From positions 1 through 47,168 of the forward strand of contig DF237599.1 in assembly GCA_000708835.1 (NCBI GenBank): 47,168 nt of DNA. Direction: 5' to 3'. Positions 349 to 16,752 of the stretch are shown piece by piece. The notes under the pieces are model-generated. The model worked only from the letters and a program-made list of their open reading frames with translations. It had not been told where the DNA came from and searched no databases. Position numbers and translations under genes: made by a program. The DNA comes from Klebsormidium nitens (taxonomy: Eukaryota > Plantae > Klebsormidiophyceae). How positions within the stretch are numbered: the stretch's first letter is position 1; each line of letters begins with the position of its first letter.

Positions 349-578
349 GGCCGCCTCTTCTTCTCCGGCGGTCCCCTGCGATTCAGCGTAACGCTTTTCC
401 GGGAACCTGCCTTCAGAGCGCCACACGCGCGCCCTTCCTGAGCTGAAAGGTGCAGAGGCTGCGGAATCCTACCTGCCGGGGCTGTCTCATCAGAGGTGTG
501 GAGCATCGCGCTGGTGACTGCTGGACGAGCTCAGGACGACACGATCTGGTGGGGCGAGCGTTCTGCGGGGCCGGGGAC

Positions 579-3500
579 ATGGCGTCGCTCCATAAAGAAC
601 CGCTGGAGATGGCCCTGGCGAGGGCCTTTGGGGAGGGAGGGCCCCTCGCGGAGGTGTATGTTGGAAAGATGAGATTCTCAAAGCTGATCCTTGGGATTTG
701 CGGGAAGCTAGAGCGACTGAAAACGTTTCACGCAGACGAGATTGCGTCCATCAAAAAGGGTTTTGAAGAGGAGAAGAAGGAACTGCTGGGCCTCACTGCG
801 GCCGCCAAGGGACAGCCAACCACCGCACGCCAAGTGGAGGCCCAGCCAGTCGCCAAGACTGGCGTGGATGAGGCCAGGCTGGCTGGCAGCGCCGCAGAGG
901 GACGACCTGGGGCGGAGTCCGCGGATGTTGCAACGCTACGCGGGCTGCAGGCGCAGGTAGCGGAGCTGCGCGCAGAGCTGGAGGCATGCGCTGCGGCGCA
1001 GGAGGAGAGCGTGACGGGCATCCAGGTGGTGGCCGCGCAGGGAGCCAGGTGCGGCAGGAACACGTGCAACACGGCACTGCTGAAACCCATTGAAGATTTG
1101 CGGAAGCGTGTATGAATGATCAGATGATGTGCAAAACGAGTTGGTTGTCGCAGCAGCGGAGGGTTGGTGTCTCATGCTCCCACCTCCTTCAGAACTTTGC
1201 GAGCAGGCTATGAAGCAAGAAGAGGGCCTTTATTGAACATTGCATGAGTCAAAACGTTTTTGTAATAAAGCTTGCCCCAGTACTGCAAGCTTCTTTGGCA
1301 ATTGCTTCTCCTGAAAACGTTTGATGGAAAGGTGGCACCCAAAACGTTCTATGAGGTAAGCAGCCCTGAAAACGTCTTGCTTGAGGGGCAGTCTTTTGAA
1401 GGCTATGATTGCAAACCAGCAGAAGAACGTTTCTGTTTAGTACCAGCCTTGAGAAAGTTTTTACAGGACTCCTTTTGTGAAAACGTTCTGATTGAGACAC
1501 TCCAAGAACGTTTCTTTGCGGAGCAGCCACTAAAACGTCTTCATGCAACAAAAGCCAGCCCTAAAAGCGATTTGAAAGGCAGTCAGCAGCGCTTTATCAA
1601 GACACAGCCATGGCAAACCTGCAAATGATCGGGCAGAGTCAGCTTGAAAGGATCTCATAAAGAGTCAGCAACAGCTTGGGTGGAGACATCATTCAAAACG
1701 CTTTTGTAAAGACATTTCGTCCATCTTTTGACTCTCTGCTATTCAACCCTAGTAGTTTTTGCAGTGCAGGCAAAACGCTTTGTTGGGGACAAGTTCGAAA
1801 TTGATTCAGTTGGCAGCAGTCTTGAATTTTGCTTTCTCCATGACATGCAGTCCCCAGAAACGTTTTCGTTGAGAACAAGCGCTCAAGGCGTTCTGCCCGC
1901 ATGCGCGCCCTGGAAACATTCTCTTTGAAGAGATGACAGAGAAGCTTGGTTTGGAGACGCCAAGTCCGAACGACCTACATCCATTGATGTGCTTGTTAAA
2001 CGTTTCGGTTGAGTAATAGCCCAGGAATCTTTTTTTGATGGAGAATCTTTTGTGTCCCAATACAGCCAGCCTGGACAATTTCGTCTTGAGCGCCTGCCCT
2101 CAGCCCCACTGTGTGCTTGCAAGCTTGTCTCCTCTCTCCCTGGACGTCTCCCATCCGCCGCTCTGCCTGCTCGCTTCTCTGTGGCCCTCTTCCGCATGCT
2201 TGCGGCTGTGCTCTGGCAAGGCTTTGCTTCATTATTTTCCCACCCCTGCTGCCTTGCCCTGGCCCTCTGCCCTGTCCTCCTCCGCAGGCTGCTCTGCTCG
2301 TCAGGCCCTGCTGATTCATGCCTAAGAGGGCGTCAAAACCCTCGATTGGACGGATTTGCGTCCACTCAAGCGCAAGGCTCGGGGCATGCTCTGGCTGGAG
2401 TTGGCAAGGCTGTATAACCGGGCCTGTCTTGCTTCCTGAACATTTTGACGACATGCTTGCGTCGCGATTGCCAGAGTAGCTCCGCCTGAGCCGTCTTGAA
2501 GGGTTTCTTCTCCTGGCTGGGCGTCTCGCTGCCACGGGTGGAGCTCAAACATGAGAGGGGTGTGCCAAGATTCAGACCTGTGTTGGTTCTCGTTCGGTTT
2601 CATGACCACCAAAGTCCGATGCGCATCTCTGTCGCTGAGGTGGACATCAGAAGCGGGTCCGATTGTCTTTGCTCAATTTGGTGCCGCTGATTGTCCCTGT
2701 CTGGGGCAGGTCCTCAAGCGACACAAGCGGGCCAGACGTCTTCAAGAGCACTCGTTTCAACCCTGTGTGTTCAAGTCTGCCGATCCTCCCTGGTCACCGA
2801 TTGTTGAGAGACAATGGCCGTCAGGACCCTTCGGCGGTTCCTTCCGGGGTTTGCTTTCTTTCCTGAGCCCATTTACCCCTTCGCTTTCAGACCCAGGACT
2901 GCCGACTGTCGCCGTATTCTGCAACCTGAAATCGTCAACGAATCGTTCTTGTGCAGGGACTCACGCTGGGTCTTCCGAGCCTCATCTCGTTTGGACCCAT
3001 TTGTGAAGAAGAGGCTGGTGTCTGTCCCCCGACCCAGGTCCTCTTGCTTTTCTCGCACCCTGGCAGGCCTACACTCCGTGTTCAAAGTGGACGCTAGCTA
3101 CCTCGAACCGCCCACTTTCTGGTGCATCGTATTTCCTGCTCGATCTAATCACCGCCTCCCCCCTCCTTTCCGTGCAGGTCTGGCTGCCCATCGTGCCAGG
3201 CGGTGAAGGCCACGGTGGGTGCCTGGCGCGCGGCAAACGGGCTGGCGGGCGCGGGCGAGACGGTGGCGAGCGCGTACGCGAAGCTGGACCTGCGCGACCG
3301 CGAGGCGCTGCTGGCCATCCTGGACCTCGAGAAGGCCGCGCCCGCCGCGGGGCCGCACGACGCACCCCCCGTAGGCGACGAGCTGACAGCGGAGGGCCTG
3401 CTGGAGCGGATGACCGACGCCAGTGCGGAAGGAGTCAAGCTGCGGGGCGGCAGCGCGGGCGCGGAGCGCGACGCGCGGGCGGCAGACGGGGACGTGGACG

Positions 3501-5755
3501 CGGGGTCGAGCCGCAGCAGCGACGAGACGTGGAGCTACGAGGAAGAGCAGAGAGGGGACTCGCGGGGGAGCGCGGCGGTGGCGCAATTGGCGGCGCTGTC
3601 GGAGGCGCTGGACGCGGAGGCGGAGGCGCTCAATCTGCGGCTGACGGCGGAGCGCGGGGTGGTGGGGGCGCCCGAGAGGAGCGACTGGGCGCAGGAAGCC
3701 AAGGAGGCGCGCGTGAGAAGGGCGGCCGCGGAGGCGCGTGCGCGGGGGGGCAAGGCGAAGGTAAGGGGAGGGAAAGACCGCCTACGCGGGGACGAAGGGG
3801 TTGCTGGGGTCCATCCGTTGGGCGGCTGCCCTGTCTCGTAAACCTGGGCACGCAAGGCAGGGGTATGAGGGACGAGAGCCCGACTGTGTCGGATTCGCTC
3901 ACTCCCGTCGGTTGACGGACGGGCGTTGCAAGGCTCTCTGATTGAAATCTAACACAAAAGCCTTTTCCTGACTCAGCTCTGTCGTGGCCGTGGTGCAGGC
4001 TGCCTCGAGTAAGCCTCTGAATGAGCCTTCGCGTCCCCCCAGCCGGCTGGGCCGCCTGCCCGTCAAGACCGCGCGCTACTCAGACAGCGAGGTACGGCCC
4101 CACGCTTCGGGCACTACACTGCTCGCGGACCGGCCTCGTGCCTGCCACGTTAGGCAGCCTCAGCGTTCTTCGCAAGCTGCTGAGGACGCTTTCTTAAATG
4201 ATTGGAATTGCGCGCAACAGCAGATTGTTTTTCAGAAACTCCTTTGCGTCTTTGCGTCCTGCAGCAGTCAAGCCCTCAAATGATGAGCAAGGGAAGGCGC
4301 CGCTTCGGACGCCCCTCCCATCCATCTGGGTATTGACCCCCCCCCTCTCTTTCGTGCAGTACGACTTCGAGCTGGAGGAGGCCCCCCCTGCGCGCAAGCG
4401 GCCGCGCCCCGACTCGCTGCGCCCGCTGGAGGAGCGGCCCAGCATGCCGCCGCTCACGCCGAGCCCCACCTGGAAGCTGAACGCCCAGCCCGACTGGAAG
4501 CCCGCCGGGCCGTCCCCGCGCGCCGTGCTGGGCCTAGCCTCGCCGCAGGCAGCGCGGGGTGGAGCGGGGAGCCTGCCGACCCCGCGCGTGACCAAGGCGT
4601 TGGGAGGCGCCGACTTTGTGCGCGAGCTGGACGCGTTCTGCAAGCCCAAGCACGGCAAGGACGGGCCGCGCTTCGAGGGCAAGCTGCGAATCTGGAAGAG
4701 CGGCGAGGTCGTCATGTTCTGCCGCTGCGACGCCTGCACCGCCAAGCACGGTGAGCACCTACCCCGACAGCCAGCCGGGCGGCCGCGGGGCTCCTGGCGG
4801 CTGCGGCTTGGCGTTTCAGTGGTCCGGGGAACGGGCGAATGTTCGTGTAAACTGAACGTCTGCGATATGAGCTTTGACACGGGTTGAGGGGATATTCATT
4901 CTGTCACATCATTGTGTTGGACGGAAGGGCCTTCTCTCGATTGCGTGTTGTCCTCTAGTCTGACGCCGGTGGGTTGTGCGCCGCAGGGCCAGAGGGCGTG
5001 GGCATGTCCCCGGTGGAGTTCGAGGTGCACGCGGGCCGCGGCGCGACCAAGAAGTGGCGCCACAGCATCTGGGTGGCCTACCCGCAACTGCATGGCCCAC
5101 CGCATGAGTCCACCATAGAAAAGTGCGAGGAGCTCAACGGGGGCAAAAACCTCACCCCGGTCGGGCTTACCGCGCCCGGGGCCGCCACGCCCCGACCGCC
5201 GCCGCCGCCACCCGCCATGCAGCGGCACGCGGACCAGCTAGTGCAGGTGAGCGCTGAGCGAGAGCCCAGCACGGCTCGTGGGGGTAAGAAGATCTGAGTC
5301 TTTCGAAAGCCGTGAGTTCGAAGGGAGATTACCCACTGGTCCAAAGCCTCTGCGACTTTTCTTGGTAGAAGGCGAAGCTTTGAGACACATTGGGTCCGGC
5401 TCATTACCTAATTGTTATTACTGTAGAGCTTTAAACTGCTACTCCAGACGTTTGATTCGCCCCCCTGACCGTGCAGTGTAAATCGTGTGGGAAATGGCGG
5501 CGCTTCCGGCGTGCGGTGCCGTCCGACTTTGCGCGGGCGGCGCGCGCGGCGGCGGACCCCGACTGGAAGTGCGCGGACCACTACGACGCGAGCGTGGCGA
5601 GCTGCCACATCCCGGAGGAGCGGTCGAGCCGCAACCGGCGGCCCGGGTGCGAGGCGTGCTACTTCAGCGAGCTCGGGTGCGCCAAGTGCCGCGACTGCAC
5701 CGGCTGCAATTACTGCCGCCCCGCGCAGCCGCCCGAGGTGGAACTGCTCGAGTGA
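579..5755 (+). CDS. ULT1: ULTRAPETALA-like SAND-domain chromatin protein with long N-terminal extension and C-terminal CW-like/ULT Cys-rich domain (paralog 1, ~691 aa)
   Basis: Six exons join in frame at GT/AG sites: 579-1048, 3178-3760, 3999-4091, 4360-4750, 4987-5246, 5477-5755 (phases 2,0,0,1,0; 2076 nt). SAND region: FEGKLRIWKSGEVVMFCRCDAC..MSPVEFEVHAGRGATKKWRHSIWV. C-terminus: HADQLVQCKSCGKWRRF..DPDWKCADH..SCHIPEERSSRN..GCEACYFSELGCAKCRDC. Both segments resemble Arabidopsis ULT1 as I recall it. The symbol means homologue, not proven orthologue; the start codon is tentative. Confidence 0.85.
1251..2010. repeat. Degenerate ~27-28 bp tandem array with AAAACGTT core in intron 1 of SAND paralog 1
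   Basis: The core A(A/G)AACGT recurs at 1251, 1314, 1341, 1369, 1424, 1480, 1505 and 1532, with weaker copies to ~2000. Units include CAGCCCTGAAAACGTCTT and CAGCCACTAAAACGTCTT. Confidence 0.65.
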
Positions 5756-7317
5756 CAGGCGGCACTGGCGGGCCTTGCGAGGGACGGGGGAATGTATAGC
5801 GGTGTGTTTGTCAATCCCGTGTAAGGGTTGCCCGTCAAAGGTAGCGGTCGCTAATCTGGAATTCATAAATGGTAAAGTTAAGAATGTCGACACTGGCCAG
5901 TTCGTTGACCCCTTCATCGTAGGCAGGGCTATCCGCTTTGGATTGGATTGCGTTTTCCAAGCTTCTACTGAGTAAGTAACATACCATGGTCTATAATCAG
6001 GCTCTTGCAGTGAGGTTATTTTCGTCAATCTCTAGGCAGATTGTTGCATCGACTTCTGCACTTATGATTGGCCAGATTTGTCAGCATGCGGTGCCTGCGG
6101 TTAGGCAAGGCAATACCTGCAGTCGGCCGGGCAGTCAGAATCTTGATGTATGCCGGGACAAGAGACAAGCTCACTTGATAAATATCGCCGCACTGTCTAC
6201 GGCCCATAAAACCAGGACCTTTGTTTGACTCGCATCTTGCAATGGTTACCGATCGTTGCGGATTGATTGCAAGAGCTCATGTATGCCGGCGCCGCAAGTT
6301 CCCAGCTCAAGAGCACTGCATCTTTCTCATGAAATTACTTTGTCCTCAGTCCTACGTTTTCAACGCCAGCTTCATTTATGGAAAGGTCCTGACATCGTAT
6401 CGTTTCCCGCGCATTCGGGAAAAATCGCAAGCTATAGCCCTTGTGTGAGCAAATCCCGCAGCATACATGCAGAGTCCTTGACGACAATGCGTCAGACTGC
6501 TTGTTTCCCCCGCATCGTTTAAAGAGTGCCTGACCGTGAAGATAAGGGTGGTGCGCGCCTAAGACCACCTCACCTACACGCCAAATCTTTCCCTCAGGTC
6601 ACTATGTGTCCTCATTCAGTATGGGCTGGACAATTGATTAGCGAATCGGTTGGGCTCTGTTGCCGCTATAGGTGGCTGTTCACCCTACCTCGTGTCACAC
6701 CTTGTATAGTAGTGCACAACATGATACATCCGCTGCGCAAATTCGGAATTGCAGTAGGTACAGTAACTTAGTCTTGCCGTATCACTGTGACTGGGGGATG
6801 TTGATACGCGATCCTTGATCCTCAAGGCCCCCGCCAAATCCTAGAGGCCACGTGTCACTCCAGGGTCGCATCGGAGCGTCACGTCAAAGTGTTCAGCGAC
6901 CGTTTGTTTCAACCGCTACAACACGGACAACTGAATGGCAGCACTGGCCGAGGCCAGGCGGTGACAAGCTCCAGATGTGACCTGCGACCCTCTCAATGTT
7001 GGCAGGGGGGAGGCGGAGCAGCCGCGCAGACAGGCCGACCAAACCAACACACAAGATTGCAATCCAGTCAGGCTGAGATACAATCATTGATCAACCCGCA
7101 ATCACCAAATAGATCGCAAGACGTGAAAGGGGCAGGGAGAGATTGCTGAACACTGTGTTGAGGAGTCAAGCTAACTATGTAATTATTCAGGGCGCTATCC
7201 CTCGAGAGTTCATTCTCAATTGGTTGACGCAGGAAAGGAGAGGGGGCGCATGTCCTTCCGCTGAGATTCTGGACCCCTCAGGAGCAGCGCCTATCGACAT
7301 TCAGACTGGAAAGCACG

Positions 7318-10300
7318 ATGCTGCAGGACGCTGTGCATTCTTCAGGGTCGCTGCCTCTGGAAGTGCAGCTTGCGGGGATGTTCAGCCGCGGTGGTCTTTT
7401 GGAAGACGCCCGCCTGGGAGGCATGCACGTTGGCAGACTCATGGCTAAAATCACCGCAAGCTTTGAGAGTCTCAAAGAACACCAGGCCGATGAAATCGCA
7501 GCGCTTAAGAGAGGCTTTCGACTGGAGATTGAGAAGCTCCTCGGTGACATTCCAGGGGACAGAAAGGAGACAGGACAGGATGTAGCGGGTTTTTGGCATG
7601 ATGAGTTGGAGACGCGAAGAAGCCACGAGGGATCTGATCCGTCATCAAACACAGAGGAGTCTTCAGAACAAGCCATCACTACCAATTGCACAGAGACAGT
7701 TTGTTTGCAGAACAACGAGATCAGCGAGTGGGATCCGCAGGACTGCACGGAGCTTGCGATGGTCTGTTCAGATCCACCCGCTGAGCACCGAACGATGCAA
7801 GGAGTTGACAGGTTGGTTGTTCAGAAGAGCATGCTCGTCGTCTCGAGCTTTTGACTAAGAATGATATCCCAGGTGACATGGCCGATATTGACCTGCTTCT
7901 GAGGGCCCCCTTAGAGGGCAACCATTTGGAGACTCACCCTCAGACACTCATACGCAGGTCTGGAAGATGCGCACCATCTGCTTACAGCTGTTCTCAGCAT
8001 CTAGCAAGTTACCATGACAGTCTATAATAATTACCTTAAGAGACATGTCAATCGTTTCAAGAGCATTTCAGAAGCAATTGGACGTTGTCTGTCAAGCAGA
8101 TTGACAATCGCATCCTGTAAACGTCTCACTTCTGAAATTTTTTCGTTTGCAAAGTGATCGGAATTCGGCAAGTTGGTCACTGCGCCAGCAGGTTTCTTCG
8201 CTTCGAAGGAGCGGTGTACTACTCTTCGCTTCTTTTCTACCAGCAAACGAAACCCCACGAAGTGAGAATGAAATAATAGCTCGGCGCAGACAGTTCGGCA
8301 GGAGTTGCAGTAGGCACCAAGCAGGCTAAGTTTTCAGGCCTTCACATGCGCGAGGTAGTAAACATGTACTCTGCACAATCATTTCAGCTCCAATTATTCT
8401 CGTCTCACCCGGAGGTTGCTTTGAGTCAACAGGACTTCTGGTCATCTCAGATTCATCCAACTTGAGTCGACAGGTACATCTCGTTGGCAGAAGTAGTAGC
8501 ACTCAATTGAAGCTTGCGTTCATTATGGCGCTTACAGGCTTACGGTTCTGCAGAATCCTGACTCGTAGTTTATGCATCCTCTGAGACGGTCTTTAAGGAG
8601 CAGTCCATGCGCTCTCACTGCCGCTTCGTTCCCTAGCAATGGCGTGGTTATCAGCTTGAAGGGACATCTCCTGATTTCTGCGACCCCTGTGCAGGTCGCC
8701 CCCCTTCCCAGCCCCCCTCGCCGGCACCTGCAAGCGCGCCTGGGACAGCATGGAGATGCTTCAGCGCACACACGGTTCGCACTGCCACGTGGATCAGCCT
8801 GTGAGTGGAGACCTGCCTGGGTGGGGCCAGGGCCTGTTGTCCCCCGCCAGCGTGCTCCCGACGGCCTCCTTCTCCGAGCAGTCCGGCATGTCATCGGAGT
8901 GGGGGGCCGAGGCGCGAGACACCGCGGGCAGCAGCGCGTGGGGCCCGCGGTCGGAGGAGGCGGACCGCGAGAGCGAGCGGCTCAACCTGGCGCTGCAGCC
9001 GGAACAGCGGATCGACGACAGCCAGGACGCGCCCTGGCGGAAGGAAGCCGCGGAGGCCAAGCGCAGGTTCGAGGACAGCCTCGCGCAGAGCTGGGCGCCG
9101 GAGCAGGCCGCCAAGGTGAGGCGACACGACTGCTTGGTCTGACCGTGAAGCACGACTTTGGCTTGGTCAGCACATGTCATTTGTAGAAATGACGAACTTC
9201 TTCTCTTCGGAGTCAGCGCCTGATCATCTCTGGGATGCGAGTCGAGATACTTCCACCGGAAGCTTTTCACCTCCGAAATGCCCTCTTCTCAGTCTCCTTG
9301 TTCTTCTCGATTCCGAATCCTCAGCCTGGTGTCCCAGATTACTCTGCCACTCACGAGCCGCAAACAACCACGCGGAACGCCCGGCCTTGGCTGCTCGCCT
9401 TCACCCCCGACCCCAAGCCCCTTCACGGCCGCCGTCGTCATCCCGGCCACTGCTCCTTCCCCCGCGGCCAAGCGCGTCCGGCGCAGCCAGAGTCCCTTCC
9501 GCGACTACCCCAGCCCCGCGCCCGAGCAGAAGCTTCCCCCGCGGCGGCCACGCCTCTGTTCCCGAGCATAAAGCGCGCGCGCACCAAGCGGCTCGTGGCG
9601 GCCGTCCAAGTGGCGGTCCTCGCACTCCCCTGCCCTTTCCCTCCCACCGCCGCCGAGCAGCGCCTGCCGCCCCCGCAGCCGCCCGTCGCCGCCGATCACG
9701 GACAGCCGCTGACGTCACCGGCTGCTCCGGCCTCCCCCCGGTCGCCGGCCCCTTCCTCGCTGAGCCCGAGCGCGTTGCTGGCGGACGAGACGGTGCACAA
9801 GTACCAGGCGTTCTGCAAGCCCAAGTCGGGGACGGAGGGGGCCAACTTCGAGGGGACGCTGTGCGTGATGCGCAGCAAGAGGGCCATCGTCATCTGCGCC
9901 TGCCGAGACTGCGTGGAGACGCATGGTGAGCAAACAGGAAAACCGAGATTGCAAATAAACTGCGAGGCGGCTTCGGAGTGGTGCTAACTTCGGTGTTCGT
10001 TTCAAAAAGAAGCTGGTGAGTGGAAGATGAAGGTAGCAGATGCTTAACTTTTGCGAGTCTTGAGAAGATGGAGAAGCCCTTTTGTCTGAACAGCTTCGCT
10101 TGAGATTTCGAATCCATTCGACAGTGGTGAAAGACTGTGAGGGCCCATTTCAAGTTGATCCAATTTGGACAAGATCGAAATGCCTTCATGTCCATGGCAC
10201 TTATGCGGTTCAAGACCGTGTTCTGACAATAACCCTCGCTCTGTGCTTTTCTGCGCCAGGCGCGGCGGGTCGCGGTCTGTCTCCGGTGGAGTTCGAGGCC

Positions 10301-10525
10301 CACGCGGGGCGGCTGCACCACAAGAAGTGGCGCCAGAGCATCTGGGTGCGCCTCCCCGCCGCGGGCGGCCCCCGCGAGACGACCGTGGAGCAGTGCCGCG
10401 CGCTGCAGGGGGGCAAGCACCTCGTCTCCGTGCCGGCCGCGCCAGACGCGCCGCCCGTCAGGACCAGCTCGCAAGCGCCCGGCCGACTGCGGCACAGCGG
10501 GAGTTCCGGGGTAAGCACGACGTGA
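7318..10525 (+). CDS. SAND-domain ULT-like protein, paralog 2 (no recognisable C-terminal Cys-rich domain)
   Basis: Exons 7318-7811, 8695-9115, ~9325-9925 (acceptor uncertain), 10260-10525 (or spliced at the GTAAGC donor at 10511). N-module PLEVQLAGMFSRGGLLEDARLG..QADEIAALKRGFRLEIEKLLG is homologous to paralog 1. SAND: FCKPKSGTEGANFEGTLCVMRSKRAIVICACRDC..LSPVEFEAHAGRLHHKKWRQSIWV. The phase-2 intron after the N-module and the phase-1 intron inside SAND match paralog 1. Confidence 0.75.
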
Positions 10526-12775: not shown

Positions 12776-15700
12776 ATGGCTCCCCGTCGTCTGCCTGCAG
12801 ATCTTCATGTAAAAAGTCCTCCCTCCAATTCTGTGCGAGGTAACGATCCGCTGAAGAACGCGTACCTTGGAGATCTGCACTTCCGCACGCTTCTGGAAGC
12901 GATAGCAGGCAGGCTGCAGTGTCTCGAGTCGCAGCACGAACAAGACGTTGCATGCCTGCAAAACAGCTTCGCGAGGGAGAGGGACGGGTTGCTTGCTCAG
13001 CTAAGCCGCCAAGATGGACAGGGCAAAGCCGAGGAAATGATGATGGGGGTTTCTGAAACGAAAGGAGTCGCTGGAAAGGATGAGGTCACGCAAGAGAAAG
13101 GGGAAAGAGGCTCTGAAGGGGCGACACGTCAAGCGATCGAAAGCAGTACCGTAAATCACAGACGTTCATCTCGTGGAACAGATCCTGACCCTTGGGGAAA
13201 AGAAAGCATTGCAAATAGAGCTTTCCCGCAAGAGGGTGAGCAGGTTTTCAGCGGTAACGTGACTGAAGCTCCGTTTGCAATAGAAGTCTCGAAAGAAGCA
13301 GAGCCGGCCAAGGTGATATTCGAGCCGTCCGAGTGGAGAGCAAAGGAAGACGACGATTCAATGCACGAGAGCAAGACACAAGGGATACACAATCAGGATC
13401 AGTCACTGAAACTTCTACGGCCCTCTTCGCTGGTGCAGGTCGGAGAAGAAAAGGCTTCAGGCAGACTTCTTGATTCCTTCCTTTCCAAAAATAGCACAGA
13501 GTTGGTGCAGGTTGGAGGAGAAAAGGCTTCAGGCAGACTTCTTGATCCCTTTCTTTCCAAAAACAGCACAGCAAAGCAAGCAGTACATATGGACTCGCAC
13601 ATGAACGCAGAAGCGTTATTGACAGATCAAGGAAAGGGCACAGTGCCTGTGGCTCTGGATTCGACCGAGCCTGGACCTTATTCTGCCAGCCAGTTCGACG
13701 TTGCAGTGAGCCAGATGCAGGACGCAGCCCGCAGAGAGGCAGTGAGGTGCACCTGCGTGCATGCAGGCTTCCTGAGCCAGCTGGGGCGCCTGTCACAGCA
13801 GAAAGCCAGGTGAGAGGACGCCCGACGGATTCAGTTTTTCATTGCGCCCCATCATATATTTGACTTCTGTACTCTGACGCGAGGACGACCATCGTTGCAA
13901 GATACGATGGCGTGCTCCTGTTTGACTCAGCAAGAAGGAATGCCAACATGGACAAGGCAGAAAGTAGTTGTTGTTTGCAAAGCAATGGTTAAGACTTAGT
14001 TTGCTTTTATCCGCATGCTTGATTGTGGAATTGCCGTTTTCAAGTCGGGTGAAACATTGTGTGAGGGTGAGACAAACGATCTCTGTCAAGTTTATTTTCA
14101 TTTGTCTTATGCTTTTATTCATTTTCAGATCCTGACGGAAAGTATCTGGTGCGAAGCTCTTTAAACCCGTTCTAATATGACGACATTTCGAACTTGTGTT
14201 GGTAAGCATGTTCGGCAGCTGAGCGTTCCATCCCTGCAGCGGTCGCTGCGCGGTGTGCCGCGAGGTGGAGCGGAGCGCGCGGTCGTGGCAGGCCCAGAGA
14301 GGGGACTGGCGGGACGACCCAGGGGCGGCGGAGAACGCGGCGCTGGCGTTGGTAGACATCAAGTGGAGCAGGACAAGCGTAGAGGCGATGCTGCTCCGCA
14401 TGAAGGCCCGGAACGCCAACGGAACGGCAGCAACTGGCGAGGGGGGTCAACGAGCACCGCTGACGTGGACGGATCACGGCGAAGACGCACTTCCTGGAGC
14501 TGACATGAGCCTCTGCAGCGATCAAGATCAGGGGCTGACTGTCAAGAGCCTGAGCCAAGGCGACGCTTCGGGTATCAGGGAATGCGCTGAAATGAAGGAG
14601 AGCAGCAGAGACGTGAAAGACAGCACAAGCACCCCTGAGGAACTCGAGACAGAACAGCAAATCGATGGCCTGGCTCTAAATAGTGAGGTTCTCTTGGAAG
14701 GAGAAGGAGCGCAGCCTGCGGAGGACAACGAGACGGTAGACGCGCGCGAGCGCGAGCGGTGGTCGCAGCAGATGCGCGAGCTGGCTGCCAAGGTCAACAG
14801 AGAGGCCCAGGGGTGGCAACGGTACGCGCGAGCAGCAGGCGCAGCGGCGGTGGGGAAACGGACGGCGGCAGGAAGGCGTGGCAGAAAGACTGTGATACGG
14901 AAGCAGGAGGAGATCGCACCAACGGGGGCAGTGACGAAGCGTGCCAAGGTGCTGCGGCAGGGGCCCCGGCAATCGTGGAAGCGGCGGGAGGCGCTGCAGG
15001 CGGCGGAGGAAGAGGCGCCGCGCGAGGAGCCGCGAGGATCAAAGATGCGCGGGGGATCAGGGAAGCGCGGGAAGAAGAGCATGAGGCACCACGCGGCAGG
15101 AAGAAGGGGCAGGAAGCGGACGGCGAACGACGCGGAGGTTGGGGGGACCGAAGAGGTGAGTAGCCTTCCGAGCGAACGGCGGGGGGTGCATTGCGCAGTC
15201 TCTTGCCGCGCCGCCAAAGGAATCAAGCATCACCAGAACTTAAATATCTTGCCGTGCGCCGCGGTGCTGACTTTAAGATTGTGAATACCGTTATAACAAG
15301 GGCAGCAAGCCAGTGGGGCTCGTGACGTGTACTACCAGTAAGGAGCTGCTCATATCAAGAAAGGAACTTTGCTAGCGCTAGGGATCCTGAAAGCTATTTA
15401 CAGTCACATTAAGGATCATCTTCTTCCAGGATCACGTGCTGACTACGCTTGACGGACCGGGGCCCCTTGCGACCACCGCGGGCGCGCAATCCCCGCTGAA
15501 AAGATTCGCGGGTGCCAGGACAACGGAGGTTAGCCGTGCACATCTTAGTCTTAGAAGCTGTTCCTCGTTCCTTGATTGCCAGTACTTATGTCAGTGTTCT
15601 TCATGCTCGAGATCCACGTCTACTCGAAGGCCTGCAGACGCTTGGTGGGTCATTCTATGCTTCGGTGGGTCCGGCTAACCGGAGCTGCGCAGCGACTCAC

Positions 15701-16752
15701 TTGGCGTCCGTTTCTCGTGCAGGTTGCAGAAGCACCTGCCGCCGTCTTCGATCTGTCCCCCGTTCCCGGTAACCCCCCCTCTTCTCCCAGGCATGCCCGC
15801 TTTCAAGCGAGGGCCGGTCCTGCTAGCCCGCTTCCACGTGGCCTGGCCCCGCAGACCCCCAGTCCCGTGAGAGAGCCCGCGAGGGGTCCGCCGGGCGGGG
15901 GCGACGTCCCCCCCGAGGCGGCGCTGAGCGACGCGCTGTGCCTGGAGGAGTACCCCGTGTTCTGCAAGCGCAAGCCGGGGGCGGCGGAGGGCGGCGTGCT
16001 GCCGGGCAAGCTGCGCATCTGGCACGGCGGCCGCGTCATGGTCGACTGCCTCTGCGCCGACTGCACCCACAGCTGCGGTGAGGGGCTGAGCTCTGCTTCA
16101 CTGACGGCGGGACTAAGTTCAACCCCGATGATTGAATCCTGCCAATGGATGCATAGAGACTCTCACGATGGGCATGGTGCTCGAAGCACGATTATTTGGT
16201 TCTTCCTTCTGGATCTCGACGTTGGTACGCGAAAAAACACGCCAAAAAAATGAAACGCAGCTTGGATACAAAGATGTTTCCGACATGGACTCTTGCTCAC
16301 GTCGATAAACCTGCCGGGCTTCCCTAAATGTCTGCCGTAAATGTTGTTGCCCTACTCTTTTATGCTCAGTGCTGTCCTTTTTTACTAGGCCCTCCCGGCG
16401 CACGTTGAGGATCTGGCAGTCTTTCAAAGAGCCGATCCGTTCTTCTTCTGCCAATCCAGCCCGTTCGCGCATCTTTTGGGTAATCTCTACGCCGTGCCGG
16501 TTGCTTGGTCTGACCGCCACTTCTCGCGTCTCGTTTGTAGGGCCTACCGGCCTGCGGATGTCCCCTGTGGCCTTCGAGGCCCACGCGGGGCGCGCGGCTG
16601 CCAAGAAGTGGCGCACCAGCATCTGGATCCGCCTGCCCGCCACCACGGCGGACGGGCCCCCGCGCGAGTGCACCCTGGACGACTGCCGCCAGCTGAGCAA
16701 GGGCAGAAGGCTCGTCCCGGGCGTCACCGGGGCTGCGATCGGAGGCGTTTGA
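12776..16752 (+). CDS. SAND-domain ULT-like protein, paralog 3 (~871 aa, ends shortly after SAND)
   Basis: Exons 12776-13809, 14240-15155, 15430-15528, 15723-16077, 16541-16752 (phases 2,0,0,1; 2616 nt). N-module DPLKNAYLGDLHFRTLLEAIAGRLQCLESQHEQDVACLQNSFARERDGLL; CxxC (GRCAVCREV); basic NLS-like GRRGRKR tracts. SAND: FCKRKPG..LPGKLRIWHGGRVMVDCLCADC..MSPVAFEAHAGRAAAKKWRTSIWI. Confidence 0.82.
13431..13570 (+). repeat. 72-bp in-frame tandem duplication in SAND paralog 3 exon 1
   Basis: LVQVGEEKASGRLLDSFLSKNSTE / LVQVGGEKASGRLLDPFLSKNSTA; copies start at 13431 and 13503. Confidence 0.95.

Follow-up and report, generated by a model that had tools for sequence, protein, structure and literature searches.

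Does the C terminus of a SAND-domain protein in the alga Klebsormidium nitens read histone tails, as CW zinc fingers do, or does it belong with the zinc-binding tail of the Arabidopsis protein ULTRAPETALA1 (ULT1), which docks on the nucleosome? The question is raised by a spliced, expressed gene on the + strand of K. nitens contig DF237599.1 (assembly GCA_000708835.1), of which we analyzed positions 1 to 47,168, a stretch of 47,168 nucleotides referred to here as the window. We think it probable that the last exon of this gene encodes an ULTRAPETALA-type zinc module, composed of a CW and a Cys-rich subdomain, whose most likely role is docking on the acidic patch of the nucleosome. What is new is a difference in the CW cage: of the two tryptophans with which such a cage reads histones, the alga retains that of the wall, which is lost in ULT1.

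The tail of ULT1 was termed a B-box motif in reviews up to 2021 (PMC7947857). A June 2026 preprint presents a 1.6-Å crystal structure of ULT1 residues 132 to 237, accompanied by cryo-electron microscopy data, in which a CW subdomain (residues 133 to 194) and a Cys-rich subdomain together hold four Zn and in which two CW residues, H135 and H163, help to ligate zinc of the Cys-rich part (bioRxiv 10.64898/2026.06.16.732580). The methyl-lysine cage is lost in ULT1: F139 is its sole remnant, and the site of the invariant Trp is occupied by E148, which is salt-bridged to K193 (bioRxiv 10.64898/2026.06.16.732580). Residues 187 to 195 bind the H2A/H2B acidic patch instead: R189 serves as arginine anchor, R192 makes a second contact, E187, S191, and Y195 contribute as well, and an R189E/R192E mutant no longer binds nucleosomes (bioRxiv 10.64898/2026.06.16.732580). 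ULT1 contacts DNA through RKWK of its SAND domain and PRC2 through the motif HRYGD; algae and the evolution of the domain go unmentioned in the preprint (bioRxiv 10.64898/2026.06.16.732580). The original prediction for the algal locus had proposed that the ULT tail may be a degenerate CW fold, which the ULT1 structure shows and which is hence not new, and the KERR that it gives for ULT1 agrees with the placement of E148 at the invariant-Trp position. A putative ULTRAPETALA homolog, GAQ90507.1, was listed for K. nitens in 2023 (PMC10037820) and may be the gene described here.

Results

Domain identity of the last exon

All searches were run exon by exon. The product of the last exon passes two Pfam models, zf_ULT1 (PF23293; 41 bits against a cut-off of 27, E = 3.3e-10, profile positions 6 to 85 of 99), which is already a separate model in that database, and zf-CW (PF07496; 37 bits against a cut-off of 27.5, E = 3.3e-9, profile positions 4 to 46 of 47); no further Pfam family, B-box included, was matched by this product at E ≤ 10. 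Residues 1 to 52 of the exon product, when scored alone, gave 38.2 bits with zf-CW and 26.5 bits with zf_ULT1, just under the cut-off of the latter, so that about 14.5 of the 41 bits reached by the whole exon with zf_ULT1 come from the Cys tail. The closest sequences in the PDB are CW domains only (MORC3, ASHH2/SDG8, ZCWPW1, and ZCWPW2); E values are 0.3 to 0.5 when the sequence is queried singly and fall to as low as 0.002 when a small profile is used. The clusters nearest to the last exon in a language-model atlas are likewise all zf-CW, with a best score of 0.93, and a feature search of the atlas with zf-CW excluded recovered no usable match. The similarity to CW domains proposed in the original prediction is recovered at the profile level, where it exceeds chance by a wide margin.

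Translation of positions 5471 to 5755 yields, in order, VQCKSCGKWRR, DPDWKC, HYD, and SCHIPEE, then a seven-Cys tail and a stop. The CW subdomain, placed by the zf-CW profile and by the PDB sequence matches, occupies positions 5477 to 5626 of the + strand, with its Zn ligands at the cysteines that begin at 5477, 5486, 5570, and 5603. The invariant Trp of KWR, which forms the cage wall, is kept at 5495 to 5497, the second Trp (of W-x-C) lies at 5564 to 5566, and PEE lies at 5612 to 5620. All four cysteines and the wall Trp of the zf-CW pattern are thus present, and the floor Trp is not: Leu occupies this position, which precedes the first Cys by three residues (5238 to 5240, read from the sequence with the exon junction taken from transcripts), as the original prediction had stated for both cage positions. 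The spacing from floor to wall is 9, equal to that of ULT1 and MORC2. A pattern scan placed the short Cys-rich subdomain at 5648 to 5716, where it reads C-x2-C-x6-C-x2-C-x2-C-x2-C-x2-C, exactly as first described, with seven Cys and no His.

We mapped these residues onto ULT1 by means of the residue numbers in the preprint and the spacings between them. H135 of ULT1, a Zn ligand four residues before the floor, corresponds to an algal His at 5226 to 5228, separated from the first CW Cys by the spacing H-x3-[floor]-x2-C; F139, the floor residue three positions before the first Cys, corresponds to the Leu; and E148 of the wall, nine residues after the floor, corresponds to the Trp of KWR. At the position of H163, a Zn ligand 15 residues after the wall, the alga has Ala, and no His is present in exon-product residues 10 to 36. 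The acidic-patch contacts E187-x-R189-x-S191-R192 are matched by E-E-R-S-S-R at 5615 to 5632, a pattern (E.R.SR) found anywhere in the exon product in only 0.8% of 200,000 shuffles. Just beyond this motif, K193 of ULT1 is replaced by Asn, and the salt bridge between E148 and K193 that closes the ULT1 cage has no counterpart in the alga, which has Trp and Asn at these two positions. The seven tail cysteines compare with about 10 in ULT1, a number obtained by arithmetic from three Zn sites with 12 ligands, two of which are H135 and H163.

Gene structure and expression

The gene has six exons separated by GT..AG introns, which are seen in the DNA and confirmed by transcript contigs from four public runs of four studies; these contigs were compared with positions 500 to 6400, and all are 100% identical to the window. 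The spliced contigs place the exons, all on the + strand, at positions up to 1048, 3178 to 3760, 3999 to 4091, 4360 to 4750, 4987 to 5246, and 5477 to about 6030 to 6080. Counted from the ATG at 579, the coding sequence comprises 2076 nucleotides, or about 690 residues. Exon 4 (4360 to 4750) encodes, according to the spliced contigs and their translation, a linker and the N-terminal half of the SAND domain (..KLRIWKSGEVVMFCRCDAC..), and this half alone has no Pfam match. Exon 5 (4987 to 5246, delimited by contig junctions) encodes the C-terminal SAND half, in which a motif scan located the DNA-contact motif KKWR (5049 to 5069), followed by a Pro-rich linker and the first CW strand, RHADQLVQ (5223 to 5246). 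Its half-domain scored 21.3 bits with SAND (cut-off 22) and 20.7 bits with SAND_ULT1 (cut-off 25), the SAND domain being split by an intron. The product of exon 1 looks like a coiled coil and has only a weak match, to HalX.

The CW finger is itself interrupted by intron 5 (5247 to 5476, GT..AG, phase 0), and the joint 5246|5477, present in spliced contigs of all four runs, makes the sequence ..RHADQLVQ|CKSCGKWRR... The zf-CW pattern that had been read across this intron is thereby borne out, with every motif in place and LVQ supplied by the preceding exon. The six bases GTGCAG end both exon 5 (5241 to 5246) and intron 5 (5471 to 5476), so the joint can be drawn at seven positions, only one of which gives GT..AG, and translation begun at 5471 yields, ahead of the last-exon product, the same VQ that is present in the spliced message. 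Downstream, the contigs continue unspliced from 5471 or 5477 to between 5913 and 6080, passing through the stop codon (5753 to 5755, placed by translation) into a 3′ untranslated region that reaches about 6030 to 6080. Since there is no splice joint 3′ of 5477, the short Cys tail is genuine.

One run (X1) also contains a low-depth contig (6.4, versus 148 for the spliced form) that, within positions 5217 to 5500, is unspliced through intron 5 and could represent a retained intron, pre-mRNA, or DNA carry-over. The read-through frame stops at 5295 to 5297 and would give a tail-less SAND protein like two neighboring paralogs.

Relatives and neighboring paralogs

When 1.84 billion representatives were searched exhaustively with HMMER, a 94-residue exon query returned three matches, of which only one is a full-length relative, the 622-residue protein Chrsp118S01740 of Chlorokybus atmophyticus, another early streptophyte alga. 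Its domains are ZF-HD_dimer, SAND_ULT1 (cut-off passed), and zf_ULT1 overlapping zf-CW. The last exon of the K. nitens gene is 42% identical to it, and the SAND exons show weak pairwise similarity. The two proteins share the order of SAND, CW, and Cys tail, the 23-residue spacing from Trp to Trp, and the His that precedes the first strand and corresponds to H135 of ULT1. The Chlorokybus protein differs from that of K. nitens in having both cage tryptophans (WLQC and KWRK), a His at the position of H163, and a longer tail (11 Cys and 2 His), and in lacking the Arg anchor motif. Word-index searches with the C-terminal region of the Chlorokybus protein, a 223-residue profile, and a 94-residue profile recovered nothing beyond this protein. 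The N-terminal ZF-HD dimerization domain of the Chlorokybus protein (residues 39 to 85, 40 bits) is absent from the window gene.

A metagenome scan returned a single contig, the GC-rich VFQP010012171.1, which was considered as the source of an ULT-like relative and rejected, its CW exon being generic rather than ULT-like. Its CW-type exon (1793 to 1951; ..LQCTACGKWR..EWTC..) breaks off at an apparent intron and is followed by a long Ala/Pro-rich open reading frame (ORF), and the contig probably encodes another green-algal CW protein. Residues 440 to 620 of a 1635-residue protein (P0001), another of the HMMER matches, contain at least eight copies of LGCSKCR-x-SK-x-GC-x-KCR, which share the spacing C-x2-C-x6-C-x2-C with the first four cysteines of the algal tail (GCEACYFSELGCAKCR). 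This repeat may represent a portion of the ULT Cys-rich subdomain in free-standing form, or the two may just have a Cys pattern in common.

Within the window, three tandem SAND exons with the sequence ..FE.HAGR...KKWR.SIW.. lie on the + strand at 5049 to 5069, 10322 to 10342, and 16603 to 16623, the first of them in the gene described here. A six-frame pattern scan of the 47-kb window found no second CW and Cys-tail exon for the two neighboring paralogs. ORFs near 7318 to 7854 and 12776 to 13813 resemble exon 1 of the first gene (..H.DE.A..K.GF.., in the coiled-coil region), which suggests that whole genes were duplicated and that the tail was then lost or was never copied.

Predicted fold

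AlphaFold models, built from alignments of only two or three rows, were poor. The model of the K. nitens exon (two-row alignment) reached a predicted local distance difference test (pLDDT) score of 50, was unusable, and was kept out of the fold search; the model of the Chlorokybus domain had a pLDDT of 52 overall and about 70 over the CW core. When the Chlorokybus model was compared with the PDB using Foldseek, the approximately 30 best matches were all CW domains (best E value, 0.02; probability, 0.99), and none of the 98 matches was a B-box; VIA-align placed the model at Z of 2 to 3 to the same CW chains. The nearest shape in the ESM Atlas was a cluster named “ULTRAPETALA 2 family” (template modeling [TM] score, 0.42; 70 residues aligned), whose members carry SAND_ULT1 and zf_ULT1, and the next nine atlas rows were all zf-CW proteins. 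These fold results for the Chlorokybus model all point, weakly, toward CW. For that ULTRAPETALA 2 cluster, made up of 134 land-plant proteins of the ULT2 family, zf_ULT1 is listed and zf-CW is not, which indirectly supports the notion that the zf-CW model is passed by the algal tails and missed by those of land-plant ULT proteins.

Discussion

We propose that the protein uses its C terminus to dock on nucleosomes. The CW finger, with four Cys and one Zn, would pack against the Cys-rich subdomain, and the helix that follows the CW PEE would present the arginines of E-E-R-S-S-R to the H2A/H2B acidic patch, as in ULT1. KKWR of the SAND domain (5049 to 5069), the putative counterpart of ULT1 RKWK, would contact DNA, and the SAND-DNA and Arg-acidic-patch contacts together would hold the protein on the nucleosome. 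Because the seven tail cysteines and one His make eight ligands, the tail would accommodate two Zn, for about three in all, and the module is probably a shorter, three-zinc version of the four-Zn module of ULT1.

Several observations weigh against this proposal. The Cys tail alone matches no Pfam model, the AlphaFold model of the K. nitens exon is unusable, and the Chlorokybus model finds structural matches that are weak by E value, Z score, and TM score alike. The mapping onto ULT1 needs one single-residue indel, since E-x-R-x-S-R lies one residue further from the wall in the alga. The HRYGD motif is not seen in exons 4 and 5, which leaves a link to PRC2 unsupported. The Arg motif is absent from the Chlorokybus protein, and the anchor may thus be a lineage feature or, at the frequency found by shuffling, a chance match. 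Finally, some residual methyl-lysine binding may persist, as the floor Leu is bulkier and more hydrophobic than the Thr at the same position of MORC2.

An alternative is that the module is a working histone-tail reader, in which the CW finger would bind the H3 N terminus with methylated K4 through the wall Trp and a Leu floor and so couple recognition of the tail to DNA binding by SAND, as the original prediction had suggested. The invariant Trp, the four Zn cysteines, and PEE are all kept, the CW half alone scores better with zf-CW (38.2 bits) than with zf_ULT1 (26.5 bits), Asn replaces the Lys (K193) that occludes the site in ULT1, and a Chlorokybus relative with both tryptophans makes reading the probable ancestral activity. 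Nevertheless, the floor Trp has become Leu, and in MORC2, where the floor is likewise lost (Thr496) and the wall Trp kept (Trp505), the CW domain is folded yet failed to bind any of the many H3 and H4 peptides tried (PMC5811534). In addition, no third aromatic follows PEE in the alga, and the Arg motif takes its position. With a Leu floor, a retained wall Trp, and no third aromatic, canonical H3K4me reading is unlikely; the coupling to histone-tail recognition appears doubtful on the example of MORC2, with the same cage state, and the conserved E-x-R-x-S-R rather suggests that the H2A/H2B acidic patch is bound, as in ULT1. We regard a working reader as unlikely.

It is also conceivable that the gene encodes an ordinary CW protein without kinship to ULT, whose Cys tail and SAND domain resemble those of ULT by convergence. 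The zf_ULT1 score of the CW half (26.5 bits) lies below the cut-off of 27, the tail finds no match of its own, the SAND exons scored singly stay below the SAND_ULT1 cut-off and are only weakly similar to the Chlorokybus protein, and GC-x2-C-x6-GC-x-KCR, which is like the start of the tail, recurs in the unrelated 1635-residue protein mentioned above. However, the exon as a whole reaches 41 bits with zf_ULT1, above its cut-off, across positions 6 to 85 of 99, and the order of SAND, CW, and Cys tail is common to the algal protein, ULT, and the Chlorokybus protein, the last of which is itself above the SAND_ULT1 cut-off. Also consistent with ULT are the E-x-R-x-S-R motif, the His that lies seven residues ahead of the first Cys, and the long spacing of 23 residues between tryptophans that is found in Chlorokybus too, and convergence seems to us a slim prospect. 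The remaining alternative, that the tail is a B-box-like zinc finger, takes its appeal from the label used for ULT1 in reviews up to 2021 (PMC7947857). It is contradicted by Pfam, where no B-box family is matched at E ≤ 10, by the 98 Foldseek matches of the Chlorokybus model, none of which is a B-box, and by the ULT1 crystal, which has a CW and a Cys-rich fold (bioRxiv 10.64898/2026.06.16.732580), and we therefore reject it as having next to no chance of being correct. An ULTRAPETALA-type module that docks on the acidic patch remains our preferred explanation.

The idea that the protein is an intermediate between CW and ULT holds at the level of sequence, as both Pfam models are passed, but only with a reservation. 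In ULT1 the floor is still aromatic and the wall Trp is lost, whereas the alga has lost the floor and kept the wall, and the alga thus cannot be placed at a simple midpoint from CW to ULT1; judging from the residues present, the cage looks to have degenerated differently in each lineage, with the Chlorokybus protein closest to a working reader. Tentatively, the three forms might follow streptophyte branching, in which a SAND-linked H3K4me CW reader would have turned stepwise into an acidic-patch anchor, from a full Trp-Trp cage without the anchor in Chlorokybus, through half a cage with the anchor in K. nitens, to a cage closed by a salt bridge with the anchor in ULT1. If this is true, the arginine anchor arose before the last cage Trp was lost, and the Klebsormidium protein is a surviving intermediate in which both contacts may still be in use. 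Recent work has shown that ULT1 retargets PRC2 to nucleosomes by way of a CW-derived domain that has ceased to read histone tails, and algal relatives with one or both cage tryptophans offer a natural series for timing the switch from reader to acidic-patch binder. The same series bears on whether a chromatin function of SAND-CW proteins predates land plants and their partnership of PRC2 with ULT1.

The algal module can be compared with several known systems. Like the canonical H3K4me-reading CW domains of ZCWPW1, MORC3, and ASHH2/SDG8, it has the four-Cys Zn site, KWR, W-x-C, and PEE, and unlike them it has no floor Trp, carries an insert that is nine residues longer (from the hairpin to W-x-C), and is fused to a second zinc subdomain. 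MORC2 resembles it in the replaced floor Trp, the retained wall Trp, and the spacing of nine between them; however, the CW domain of MORC2 lacks a Cys-rich extension and is situated within a GHKL ATPase, where its degenerate face docks on the protein's own ATPase module. ULT1 differs in its cage, with Glu rather than Trp at the wall (E148), Phe rather than Leu at the floor (F139), and Lys rather than Asn beyond the anchor (K193), as well as in having H163 and about 10 tail cysteines where the alga lacks an equivalent of the former and has seven of the latter. The two proteins also differ in size, ULT1 having 237 residues and the algal protein about 690, with an N terminus of about 400 residues that is coiled coil and low complexity. 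What they have in common is a CW core followed by a Cys-rich tail after a SAND domain, which in the alga is putatively of ULT type, a His four residues before the floor, the PF23293 profile that the algal exon passes, and E-x-R-x-S-R directly after the CW PEE, at the site of the ULT1 acidic-patch anchor.

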